A program made the position numbers and the translations under genes. Source: Fonticula alba ATCC 38817 (lineage: Eukaryota; Protista; Nucleariida). Taken from it: 29,625 bases of DNA. Shown piece by piece: positions 1,062 to 16,491 of this stretch (within the stretch, counting starts at the first letter, position 1; each line of letters opens with the position of its first letter). Below the pieces are notes generated by a model. The model made no database searches. It worked only from the letters and a program-made list of their open reading frames with translations, and was not told the DNA's origin. The stretch is from the NCBI GenBank assembly GCA_000388065.2, contig KB932207.1; one strand, written 5' to 3'.

Positions 1062-2273
1062 ATGTTTTCCGCTGGCCGCTTTGGCGCGTCGGCCCTCCTG
1101 CCACTGCTGGCTGCTCGGCCCCCATCCCTGTCCCCGTGGCGCGTGGCCGCCTTCTTCACGGTTTCGGCTGTTCTCCGACATGCGGACGCCAATGCCGCGC
1201 TGATGCAGTTTGTTTCCGGCTGGTCGTCGGCCGATCTGGATGAGGTGAAGGCATTCAATGCGCGCGGGTTCGACGTCGACTCCATCCCCAAGAGTGCGCC
1301 TGCGCCGCTCCGTCCAGTCCACTTGCCCTTCGCGCTGCCTGACCGCGTGCTGACTGTTTCCTTCGGCCCCTCCCCTCCTCGCCCTTGCCCGCTCCATGGG
1401 GCACATGGGTGTGCTTTTGCCCTGCCCCCGGCCCGGCCCGGCTCCTCGACCCCGGCAGACGATCTCGTCGTCAAGTACATTCGCAGCCGCGGCCCTGGCG
1501 GGCAAAACGTCAACAAGGGTACGTGGGACCCCCCGTCCGATGTCTCCCCGGCCGGCCATATGCTGACACCGTCCTCCCCTCGCCCCTGCCCGCGCCCTCT
1601 TCTCCGGCTGTCCCTCTCTCGCTCTCTCGCTCGCGTTTTCTCTCTCTCTCGTCCCCTCTTCCGCTGGCATGGCATCACCCAGTCAATAGCAAGGCCGACG
1701 TGCGCATTGTCCTCGGCACGGTCGACTGGCTGCCTCGGTTTGTCATCGAGAACCTCAAACGCATGGTATGTGTGTGTGTGTGTGCATACACTTATCTACC
1801 CGCCTGCACGTGTCTTTTCGCTGATCTCCCTCCATCCTCGCCATTGGCCCTGCCGGTCGCCTGCCGTAGGAGCCCAATCGCATCAACTCGGCCGGCGAGT
1901 TTTTCGTCCAGTCAGACACCATGCGCACGCAGTCCGCCAACTACCAGGCATGCCTCGAGCGGATCGCCGAGATGATCAATGAGGCGGCCCGGTTGCCGGG
2001 CGAGACGTCCGATGAGCAGCGGAAAAAGGTCGATCAGCTGTACGTGCCCATCCAGTAGTCCCTTGGCATCGCATTCTCTCCCCCTCCCCCCCCTCCCCCT
2101 CCCTCGCTTGGCACTCCCAGCGGGTAGGTGTCCCTCGACCGAATACTCATGTGCTTCATCCCCCCGCTGCTTGCCCTGGCCAAAGGAAAAAGGCCCAAAA
2201 TGAGCGTCGCATCCAGGAGAAGAAGCGCCGTGCCTCGATCAAGAGCGCCCGGCGGCGCCGCGATGATGACTAA
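1062..2273 (+). CDS. ICT1: ICT1/ArfB(YaeJ)/Pth4-family peptidyl-tRNA hydrolase, mitochondrial, catalytic GGQ intact (array copy 1, ~210 aa)
   Basis: Exons 1062-1293, 1459-1518, 1683-1765, 1870-2039, 2186-2273 (633 nt, in frame). Presequence-like N-terminus [48 protein letters not shown] (RF-1 GGQ motif); RINSAGEFFVQSDTMRTQSANYQACLERI; basic tail KKAQNERRIQEKKRRASIKSARRRR typical of ArfB/ICT1. Confidence 0.93.
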
Positions 2274-3139
2274 CCCCTCCACTGTCAGGACCGGGACATG
2301 CACTCTTTGTCCATCTCTTGAGGCCGTGGTTTGGCCGTCACACCCGCAAAATAGAAAAGAGTCCTTTCCCTGTGAGAGGGGTCGCGTGGTGGCAAGTACA
2401 GGAACCCGAGTCGGAGGGCGGGGGGGGGGGGGGGGGGGGGGGGGGGGGCAGGGCGGGGATGTTGAGCTGGCCCTCCTCGCAAGATGCGGGCCATTCTGGT
2501 GATAGCTTCCAATAGCGTCACATTCTACGATATAAAAATGGCTCACATATAGCAGAAAAAGCAGCACGGTGGCCTTTTAGCAGATCCGGTCGCGTGACAG
2601 TCGCACAAACAGGCCGAGCCCCTTAATTGTCCTGGCCCATGGACATCTTAGCTGAATGATGCCTTTCGTGGGCCGTGTCGGGCGCATCTTCTCGATCGTA
2701 CGCGCCGCCCTTTCGCGCCTTGAGAACGGGGCCGGGCGGGGCTCGGCGAGGGGGGCGCCTCGTCCGATGTCGGGGGGCGGGTGCCGGCCCCGCGCGGCGC
2801 CGAATGGCACTGGCCAAATCCCCCCGGCAACCGTCCCGGGGGTGGTATCCCTTCGGGTTGGCTTGATGGGGAGGCCAACACATCCCTCGATGCGTTTTTT
2901 TTTCCACAGCCATGCCCGGGGTGTGTGCGGTGGGGCAAGTAGGGCGCGCGAAGTCCACACTCCTGGTGACTTGCTCTCGGGGGGATCCCCCACTTGCCAG
3001 GGCGCGCTGCTTGCCCCGAGGCACGCGGCTCGGGACTCCCCGCTGGCACACCGCCAGGTGGTGGCGATCCTCCCCCCCCCCCCCCCCTGCCCACGCTGTC
3101 TGCGTGTCGGCCCTGGCCCGCGCCTCCCATTTGGGGAAG

Positions 3140-14294: not shown

Positions 14295-14760
14295 CTCCGC
14301 CCGCGTCTCCGACGCCTGTGACACCCTCCGGCCCCCTCGCTCGCCACATGCCAACCCTCGGGGCCGGGCCCTGGGCGGCACGCTCCATGCCCCCAGGCCG
14401 ACCAGTGTCTGAAGGGGGGTGTTTCAGTTGATCCATCGGGGCGGGGCTGCGGGGGGGGGAACGGAGCAAGGGGGCTCCTATCTATATCCGGCTGCCCCGC
14501 GATGGGCTCACTTCCCGTGGGCCTCTCCCGTGTTGGTGCGTTTGCGCAACCACACCGACACCTCCCAGGGAGGAGCGAGGAAAAAGGGCGGGGATCGCGC
14601 TTCCGTGTGGATTGCAGCGCGCGTCACCGCCTGCCAGCCCGCGCTGCTCTTCCTCCCCCCCTCCCCCTCCCCCGGTCCTTCTGTCCCCCTCTGCTGCTGG
14701 CCGTCTCCCCGGCCTGCTTCCCCCAATCGGTCCCTTGATTCCGCCACCGCCCCGGCCCAC

Positions 14761-16491
14761 ATGTCCCTCGCGCATGTGCCTCACCACGCATGCAGCATGT
14801 CCTCAGCCGACCGAGCTGCCTCCACATCGGTCCCCCAGCATGCCGGGCGTTTCCGCCATCCCTTGGATGCCCTCCCCGTAGGTGATGGGCAGCTGCGGGC
14901 ATTTGCGGCCGCCTGGTCCGCGGAGGAAATCCAGGCGGTTCGCGCCTTCCTCATGCGCGGGTTCACCACATTCTCCATCCCAAAGGGTATGGATCCCCCC
15001 TTGCGCATGCCGACCGCACCGTCCGCCGACCTGGCCCTCCGCGCGAGGGGGTTCGCTCTTTGACATGTCGACTGTTGCCCATACGCCAGCGGACCTCATC
15101 ATCCGATACTTGCCCTTTGGCCAGCCAAATGAACACGCCCCTCGCCAATACACCGGCGTGTATGGGCGGAGGCTGGCCCCGGGCGAGTCGCTCCTCGTCC
15201 CGCGGACAGGGCGCCCCTACCCGGGCTTTGGCCCCGGCGGTCGCGCTGTCCACAAGGGTATGTGTTCCCTCGTGCGCGAGGCCGTTCTTGCTTCCTTTCC
15301 TCCCCTCCCTCTTTTTTTCCTTCCCCCCCCCTCTCTCTCTCTCTCGCTGGCACATCGCCCACTAAACGCGGGCACCTGCTGCTGGCGCTGCCTTCTTCCC
15401 TCATCGCCCTTTTTCCGCCGCCCCTCGCTCTCATGGCGTTGTTTCCCGGCAACCCCCGGCCGCCCTCCCTCGGGCAGCCAACAGCAATGTCGAAGTGCGC
15501 CTCCCTCTCGACAAGGTCGCCTGGCTGCCAAAGTACGTGGCCCACAACATCCGGCGTATGGTGCGTTCCCCCGGCCGGCCCTCTTCGCCATCTGCCGGCC
15601 CTTGCCCCTGGCGCTCACCGGTCCTTGCTGCCCTTGCTGCTCCGACGCTCGGCCCAGGAGCCCCTCCGGGTCAATGGGTCCTTCGAGCTGGTGGTCTTTT
15701 CGAACCACGGCTACTTCCAGGCAACCAATTTCCACAAATGCCTGGAGGAGATCGTCCGGATTGTCAAGGCAGCAGCCATTCTGCCCGACTGGGAGGGCGA
15801 CGCCACTCGATCGACGATAGGCCTCCAGTGCGCTGCCCCCTCGGCCGCTCTCCCTCCCCGCCCTGTGATGGCCTTGACATGCGGTCCTGACGCATCAGTC
15901 CCCCCCCCCCCCCCCCCCCCTTTCCTTTCGGCCCCCCCCCCTTCCGCTCGCCGGTCTGCCCGCGCGCTCTTCCTGCCCCTCCCCCGTTCGCCTCCCCGGC
16001 CAGAAGATCCCTCGCCGTCATGTCCTCCGATAGCAGCGCCTCTGCTGGCACCCCGGTGCCCCCGATGATGACCAGCCAGATGAACTCCGAGTCGGCCATC
16101 CTCACCATCCGCGTGGTGCGCGAGGCTTCCCTCCCTCGCTCCCGGACAGATGGGCGGCACGGCTGCGCCGCTGGTGTCGTGGCTGGACCAGTTCACGGCC
16201 TCGCCACATTGTGAGAAGTATGTTTGCTGATGCTGCNNNNNNNNNNNNNNNNGGCCACTTTCGCCTGCTTCTCTGTCTCGCTCCCGTCTTCTACCGGGTG
16301 GAGGATATGGCCGCCCTCCCCCCCCCCCCCGCCGTCTTTCCTTTCGCCCATCCCCTCCCCCTTTGGCGGATGGTCCAATTTTGTTCCATGCCCCTCCCCC
16401 CAGTGCCCAAGTCGACAACGAGCGCCGGCTGAGAGGGAAGAAGCGTCGCTCTGAAATCAAGGCCGCCCGGCGCCTGATCGCCGATCGGTGA
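14761..16491 (+). CDS. ICT1/ArfB-like paralog with GGQ changed to GGR (array copy 6)
   Basis: Exons 14761(or 14797)-14986, 15090-15257, 15478-15560 (83 nt), 15658-15827 (170 nt), 16404-16491. LRAFAAAWSAEEIQAVRAFLMRGFTTFSIPK; DLIIRYLP...GFGPGGRAVHK; NSNVEVRLPLDKVAWLPKYVAHNIRRM; RVNGSFELVVFSN..FQATNFHKCLEEI; tail AQVDNERRLRGKKRRSEIKAARRLIADR*. Confidence 0.88.
16237..16252. other. Assembly gap (N run) in intron 4 of copy 6
   Basis: 16 Ns. Confidence 0.95.

Follow-up and report, generated by a model that had tools for sequence, protein, structure and literature searches.

Why should a genome carry, side by side, one gene for a mitochondrial ribosome-rescue hydrolase and five relatives of that gene from which the catalytic motif has gone? 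In a 29,625-nucleotide (nt) stretch of contig KB932207.1 of Fonticula alba (the window, to which all positions refer), we identified six tandem genes of the ICT1/ArfB type on the + strand between positions 1062 and 16491, corresponding to H696_04482 to H696_04487 and numbered here copies 1 to 6. Copy 1 is a live ICT1/mL62 orthologue with a Gly-Gly-Gln (GGQ) motif and a presequence-like N-terminus. GGQ is kept in this copy only; copies 2-6, which we call the dead copies, are changed at all or part of the motif, and the annotation of these five genes goes no further than hypothetical or uncharacterised protein. The answer we favour, with somewhat better than even confidence, is that the array is a tandem family, known so far from Fonticula alba only, that arose from one duplication of ICT1, and that copies 2-6 are non-catalytic ribosome binders whose former catalytic loop is unconstrained.

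Gene models for the six copies were built by hand from reading frames and splice sites (Table 1). The hand models of copies 1, 2, 3 and 6 are letter for letter the same as public proteins, and that of copy 5 equals the C-terminal 169 residues of P0005, which begins at an ATG further upstream. Copy 4 is represented by its hand-built model, which entered the local alignment and the tree through its coordinates and stood outside the structure models and the full-length family scans, the scans having used exons or public proteins. Every copy has four introns except copy 5, which has three (23 introns in total), and the intron phases (1, 1, 0, 2) are identical across copies, with intron lengths that vary from copy to copy between 89 and about 576 nt. 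All introns are GT-AG bar intron 2 of copy 2, whose GC donor at 3672 is the donor that the public model also uses. Exon 3 measures 83 nt in all six copies and exon 4 measures 170 nt in five of the six; in copy 5 it runs for 155 nt up to the old donor, and since a TAG stop overlaps that donor, the copy 5 protein ends there, without the tail exon. Downstream of copy 5, local tblastn of exon peptides and a reading of the sequence revealed no tail exon. When all exon peptides were compared with the window by local tblastn, no seventh copy or relic exon appeared, only low-complexity noise from the Pro-rich loop of copy 2, and in the whole genome the matches of an exon-4 profile were limited to these six genes.

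The loss of catalytic residues is shared among the dead copies. Where copy 1 reads Y-I-R-S...GPGGQ, copies 2 to 6 read YLP, YFP, YFP, YMP and YLP, and all five have an aromatic residue (F or Y) before G-[P/L], just as a prediction made earlier from the sequence of this region had stated. A Pro following the strand-1 Tyr is common to them as well. Outside exon 2 the dead copies retain most of the residues that are invariant in the family; the exception is one exon-4 Arg, part of the motif S-x3-R-x-Q-x2-N, which is invariant in 35 of 35 orthologues, kept in copy 1 and lost in all five dead copies. Copy 6 comes closest to the intact motif, with GGR in place of GGQ. The glycines of GGQ matter more than the Gln for hydrolysis, and our literature search on the effect of a Gln-to-Arg change in GGQ yielded nothing usable. 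Judged by its sequence, copy 6 would lack hydrolase activity, a view strengthened by the loss of the invariant Arg and by its insert of 37 residues.

Copy 1 scores 63.6 bits against Pfam RF-1, above the curated cut-off of 35 bits, and its 94.9 bits against NCBIfam ArfB nearly reach the equivalog cut-off of 100 bits. The ArfB scores of copies 2, 3, 5 and 6 lie below that cut-off (28.7, 45.5, 16.3 and 43.5 bits, respectively), and these four copies match neither Pfam RF-1 nor any other Pfam domain. Pfam scans of single exons, the form in which copy 4 was scanned, gave almost nothing, as expected for pieces of 20-56 residues, and no match for copy 4. Matches to the ArfB profile begin at position 26 in copies 3 and 6, at position 37 in copy 2 and at position 40 in copy 5, position 26 being what we take to be the GGQ site of E. 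coli ArfB. AlphaFold models, which cover copies 3 and 6, have a mean predicted local distance difference test score (pLDDT) of 82 for copy 3 and 78 for copy 6, with a core above 90 in both. Each model contains an inserted helix of the ICT1 type between strands 2 and 3 (residues 107-116 in copy 3 and 150-159 in copy 6) and a long C-terminal helix. The top Foldseek matches of the copy 6 model are the ICT1 chains 7nql_BL, 6vlz_p and 1j26 and the ArfB chain 6yss_y. First in rank is ICT1 in mammalian mitoribosomes, either in the A site (7nql) or as integral mL62 (6vlz, 3j7y), followed by free ICT1 (1j26) and ribosome-bound ArfB (6yss); mS35 chains match more weakly, with E about 5e-3 as against 1e-6 for ICT1.

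Copies 1, 2, 3 and 6 carry the basic motif R-x3-K-x6-K-x2-R unbroken in their C-terminal tails. In copy 4 the motif is disrupted (L to H and K to M, with Met at the third motif position, so that two of five YaeJ positions are changed), and copy 5 lacks it together with the rest of the tail. Kogure et al. (PMC3950681) found that YaeJ requires tail residues R118, K122, K129 and R132, and human ICT1 R187, K191, K198 and R201, to bind ribosomes and to be active. Because the scaffold is kept, together with, in copies 2, 3 and 6, a tail that carries these ribosome-binding residues, the dead copies most likely still dock on the mitochondrial ribosome.

Variation among the copies is concentrated in exon 2. 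Its lengths were correctly given in the original prediction (Table 1), exons 3 and 4 being nearly fixed, and all the length differences are multiples of 3. The prediction was also right that an inserted loop of varying length and charge lies between the anchors in copies 2-6. Its further statement that the exon ends align in register holds in general; for copy 2 the alignment is not unique, since MAFFT sets an upstream P-P-G-P, and not the F-G-P chosen originally, under the family G-P-G-G, and in the original register the copy 2 exon ends five residues earlier than those of the other dead copies. Pro, Gly or Arg make up 48% of the loop residues. The guanine-plus-cytosine (GC) content at second codon positions (GC2) is 0.67 in the loop cores, equal to the 0.67 of the introns, as against 0.43 in exons 3 and 4 taken together. 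Pairs of loops align no better than shuffles, copy 3 with copy 4 being a weak exception (31/2000). A likeness between the inserts of copies 2 and 6 in the MAFFT alignment was rejected, as it is no better than in composition-preserving shuffles (451/2000), and so was microsatellite expansion as the source of the inserts, Tandem Repeats Finder having shown no repeat inside any exon 2. In the AlphaFold models, pLDDT is 44-63 over residues 91-130 of copy 6, lying under 55 in its loop, and the copy 3 loop has no secondary structure and a pLDDT under 50 at residues 72-81; both models predict a disordered loop.

Table 1. The six ICT1/ArfB-type genes of the array, their second exons and the assembly gaps, with positions in the window.
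Feature	Position (strand)	Gene or protein	Details
Copy 1	1062..2273 (+)	H696_04482, 210 amino acids (aa); = P0153	exons 1062-1293, 1459-1518, 1683-1765, 1870-2039, 2186-2273
Copy 2	3236..4324 (+)	H696_04483, 199 aa; = P0152	no GGQ; exons 3236-3362, 3528-3671, 3763-3845, 3978-4147, 4249-4324
Copy 3	9276..10529 (+)	H696_04484, 200 aa variant; = P0002	no GGQ; exons 9276-9453, 9583-9669, 9846-9928, 10040-10209, 10445-10529
Copy 4	11414..12453 (+)	presumably H696_04485, 199 aa (hand model)	no GGQ; exons 11414-11585, 11721-11810, 11900-11982, 12086-12255, 12369-12453
Copy 5	13214..14081 (+)	H696_04486; compare P0005	no GGQ; exons 13214-13391, 13485-13574, 13734-13816, 13923-14081
Copy 6	14761..16491 (+)	H696_04487, 244 aa; = P0004	GGQ changed to GGR; exons 14761-14986, 15090-15257, 15478-15560, 15658-15827, 16404-16491
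Copy 1 exon 2	1459..1518 (+)		60 nt; encodes a stretch of 14 residues (letters not shown), no insert
Copy 2 exon 2	3528..3671 (+)		144 nt; loop core 3554-3655, 34 aa, net charge +3, Pro-rich
Copy 3 exon 2	9583..9669 (+)		87 nt; loop core 9609-9638, 10 aa, net charge 0
Copy 4 exon 2	11721..11810 (+)		90 nt; loop core 11750-11779, 10 aa, net charge +1
Copy 5 exon 2	13485..13574 (+)		90 nt; loop core 13511-13543, 11 aa, net charge -2, followed by a segment of net charge -4
Copy 6 exon 2	15090..15257 (+)		168 nt; loop core 15116-15226, 37 aa, net charge +3
Assembly gap	9173-9182		inside a poly-C run, 94 nt upstream of the copy 3 ATG (9276)
Second assembly gap	16237-16252		inside copy 6 intron 4

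Readings of the array differ on what the loop variation means. The original prediction took it as a sign of new binding specificities and not of decay. It is true that the proteins, taken whole, show no decay, but the loop itself appears unconstrained, with GC2 at intron level, its high share of Pro, Gly and Arg, sequences that do not align and low pLDDT, and these data fit relaxed constraint after the loss of catalysis better than new binding specificities; none of them speaks for diversifying selection. One could suppose that a loop reaching the peptidyl-transferase centre or the tunnel diversified under positive selection and gave each paralogue a binding specificity of its own. Loop length and charge that change from copy to copy, with core charges from +3 to -2, would agree with this, as would the conservation of both loop-flanking anchors in five of five dead copies, the age and intactness of the copies, and the retention in three of them of the tail that places the domain in the A site. 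We consider it unlikely, because a composition of this kind is what unconstrained GC-rich DNA read in frame is expected to give, because disorder is predicted for the two loops that were modelled, and because the acidic loop and absent tail of copy 5 argue against entry into sites lined by ribosomal RNA. A more specific proposal, that the dead copies are non-hydrolytic A-site binders whose diversified loops plug, probe or clear the peptidyl-transferase centre or tunnel entrance of the bacterial-type mitoribosome, seems to us quite unlikely. If it were true, the loops might protect against centre-binding antibiotics or toxins of bacterial prey, by analogy with the variable linker loops of the ABCF ribosome-protection proteins, and the silencing of idle mitoribosomes would be another possibility.

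It can also be asked whether copies 2-6 are proteins at all, or only transcribed and functionless relics, that is, slowly decaying pseudogenes of ICT1. Relics could explain the missing Pfam RF-1 matches of copies 2, 3, 5 and 6, the dead-copy branches 2-6 times longer than that of copy 1, the existence of public isoforms that retain introns, the truncation of copy 5 and the broken tail motif of copy 4, and chance open reading frames are common in a genome of 67% GC such as that of Fonticula alba, where the window too is GC-rich. Yet exons 3 and 4 are free of indels even though the copies are only 25-60% identical there, while the introns all differ in length; all 23 splice-site pairs are usable; GC2 is far below the GC content at third codon positions in all copies; and 13-20 of the 34 family-conserved residues are kept (fewest, 13/34, in copy 5), most of the lost ones lying in exon 2. 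The tail motif, moreover, is intact in three dead copies, and the ratio of nonsynonymous to synonymous substitution rates (dN/dS), 0.2-0.86 on saturated dS, points to constraint. Such decay is therefore very unlikely, and we conclude from the conservation of their sequences that copies 2, 3 and 6 are, in all probability, maintained proteins, with copies 4 and 5 more derived and possibly drifting.

The dead copies form a single clade. In a careful IQ-TREE run on the six copies and 35 GGQ-bearing orthologues, with the exon-2 columns removed, the six Fonticula copies group together with support of 100/98 and the five dead copies with support of 97/96. Among the dead copies, copy 6 branches first and copies 3 and 4 are sisters; copy 1 sits on a short branch, and a quick tree with all columns agrees. 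Independent characters agree with a single dead clade, as judged from the aligned sequences: the lost exon-4 Arg, the clearest of those outside the loop, and the Pro that follows the strand-1 Tyr. The monophyly of copies 2-6, and with it the predicted sequence of one ancestral loss followed by expansion, is supported by the tree and by these shared derived characters. That GGQ was lost more than once, for example with copy 6 (still G-P-G-G, and less altered in the loop motif than copies 2 to 5) as a separate offshoot of copy 1, is highly improbable: the approximately unbiased (AU) test does not reject a clade of copies 1 and 6 (p = 0.13), but the best tree places the five dead copies in one clade, and copy 6 shares with the other four the Y-L-P, the aromatic before G-P, the position of the insert and the lost invariant Arg.

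The history that we propose for the array would then begin with a single duplication of ICT1 (mL62), the eukaryotic form of ArfB and a rescue factor of mitochondrial ribosomes, after which copy 1 would have stayed a hydrolase. The ancestor of copies 2-6 would have lost GGQ together with the Arg that is invariant in S-x3-R-x-Q-x2-N, and four more duplications would have followed. Selection would have kept the beta sheet and three helices (the N-terminal one, the inserted one specific to ICT1 and the long one), together with the basic tail in copies 2, 3 and 6, so that the dead copies would dock on the mitochondrial ribosome in the manner of ICT1 without cutting peptidyl-tRNA and would have a structural or regulatory role. 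With catalysis gone, the former GGQ loop would have been freed of constraint except that of the reading frame, and would have turned into a disordered, indel-tolerant stretch, 10-37 residues long and rich in Pro, Gly and Arg, that the two anchors still flank.

Several observations weigh against this account. An unalignable loop is predicted by relaxed constraint and by diversifying selection alike. The AU test leaves room for a clade of copies 1 and 6, and the long branches and odd composition of copies 4 and 5 could inflate the support for the dead clade, so the tree alone is no proof. The dN/dS values, highest in copy 4, are crude because dS is saturated. Copy 5 combines an absent tail with an acidic loop, and copy 4 a broken tail motif with the highest dN/dS. 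The N-termini of copies 2, 4 and 5 are not presequence-like by crude counts of N-terminal charge, by which copies 1 and 3 look presequence-like and copy 6 is ambiguous. Finally, copies 2, 3 and 6 are also represented by public isoforms in which an intron is retained or an alternative donor inside an exon is used.

Among these isoforms, P0001 is a form of copy 2 that retains intron 2, and P0151, the main public isoform of copy 3, keeps intron 4 and thereby loses the basic tail. Copy 6 has two such isoforms (P0003 and P0154 among the public set), one with intron 1 left in and the other spliced from a donor inside exon 3. For copy 1, the proteins returned include one full-length isoform only. The existence of alternative public isoforms suggests that the dead copies are expressed. 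In intron 4 of copy 2 (4148-4248) we also observed an acceptor-like pyrimidine run and CAG, with the AG at 4189-4190, 58 nt upstream of the acceptor in use. Splicing there would give Leu and then TGA, and hence a protein without tail; the public models use 4249. This AG directly precedes GT and is therefore donor-like as well.

We looked for relatives of the dead copies outside the Fonticula alba genome by a hidden Markov model (HMM) scan, a word search and a metagenome scan, and found none. The HMM scan of 1.84 billion proteins returned the Fonticula proteins first and then ICT1s bearing GGQ; its GGQ-less matches were fragments or exon-skipped models and were rejected as true relatives. A word-indexed search with a profile of the dead copies matched nothing but Fonticula proteins and bacterial ArfB (at most 68 bits), and the metagenome scan, made with copy 6, gave no relative. 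The collections searched hold no second strain or close relative of Fonticula alba, and our literature search found no paper describing these genes. Among GGQ-bearing relatives that carry a source name, those nearest to copy 1 are fungal, namely the ICT1 proteins of Peziza, Rhizophagus and a chytrid. As a separate observation, exon 1 of all six copies (e.g. 14890-14986 and 3275-3362) encodes, in the N-terminal helix, the motif W-x3-[DE]-[LI] followed by an aromatic residue, which resembles the segment preceding the GGQ domain in fungal ICT1 proteins.

Two assembly gaps lie within the array (Table 1). The first is in no exon, so the comparison of exons is unaffected, and the ATG downstream of it is the start of both public isoforms of copy 3. 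Because of the second, the 576 nt given for copy 6 intron 4 are an estimate; exon 4 is joined to the tail exon across it in the phase seen in the other copies, and P0004 has this join too. Many tracts of poly-C and poly-G fill the spacers of the array, as do long arrays of (TG)n and (TC)n (8994-9074 and 7270-7355), and a G-rich homopolymer run of about 204 nt (10676-10879) lies between copies 3 and 4. The spacer between copies 2 and 3 (4325-9275) is 4.9 kb long and holds neither an annotated gene nor a relic ICT1 exon, the other spacers measuring 0.7-1 kb; no Pfam family was found in the long open reading frames of this spacer or of the opposite strand. Just downstream of the copy 5 stop is a (CG)10 microsatellite (14274-14294), one frame of which reads as an Arg-Ala repeat; we considered it as a remnant of the basic tail and rejected it.

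A live parent and five dead descendants thus lie next to one another, with one loss event, a conserved docking scaffold and tail, and a loop that varies at the former catalytic centre. This makes the array a natural series for separating the docking of ICT1 from its catalysis, and for studying the role of non-catalytic ICT1 in mitochondria. Dead release-factor paralogues have repeatedly become ribosome-binding parts, as in Dom34, mS35 and plant PrfB3. Compared with ICT1/mL62 (MRPL58) and ArfB (YaeJ) themselves, the Fonticula proteins have the same fold, including the inserted helix, and copies 1, 2, 3 and 6 have the same basic tail motif. Copies 2-6 differ in lacking GGQ and the invariant Arg and in carrying 10-37 additional residues in the catalytic loop, copies 2, 3, 5 and 6 in lacking a Pfam RF-1 match, and copy 5 in lacking the tail.

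The array is unusual, and dead copies of ICT1 are already known in other lineages. Ticks and mites have an expressed ICT1 paralogue of normal size without GGQ beside the canonical ICT1 (Duarte et al. 2012, PMC3472500). Compared by description, this extra ICT1 is like the Fonticula copies in having lost GGQ in the presence of a canonical ICT1, but it is a single gene in another lineage, for which no tandem family or variable insert has been described. An arthropod cluster with a weak RF-1 signal is among the nearest ESM Atlas neighbours of copy 3, which we mention as a lead only. It has been proposed that mS35 (MRPS35) arose by duplication of ICT1, was deprived of the catalytic Gln and became a structural part of the mitoribosome (Burroughs and Aravind 2019, PMC6514570). 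It shares with the dead copies an inactive domain of the release-factor type, and its chains are among the weaker Foldseek matches of copy 6. Unlike them, mS35 is an ancient, widespread and single-copy protein of the small subunit with two extra flanking helical domains, whereas the Fonticula copies keep the architecture of ICT1, the only architecture that the models show, and its tail. Dom34/Pelota, an inactive paralogue of eRF1 without the catalytic Gln, enters the A site for non-hydrolytic rescue (PMC6514570). It is a cytosolic protein of another fold family that acts together with a GTPase, and its likeness to the dead copies would thus be one of possible mode of action and not of homology.

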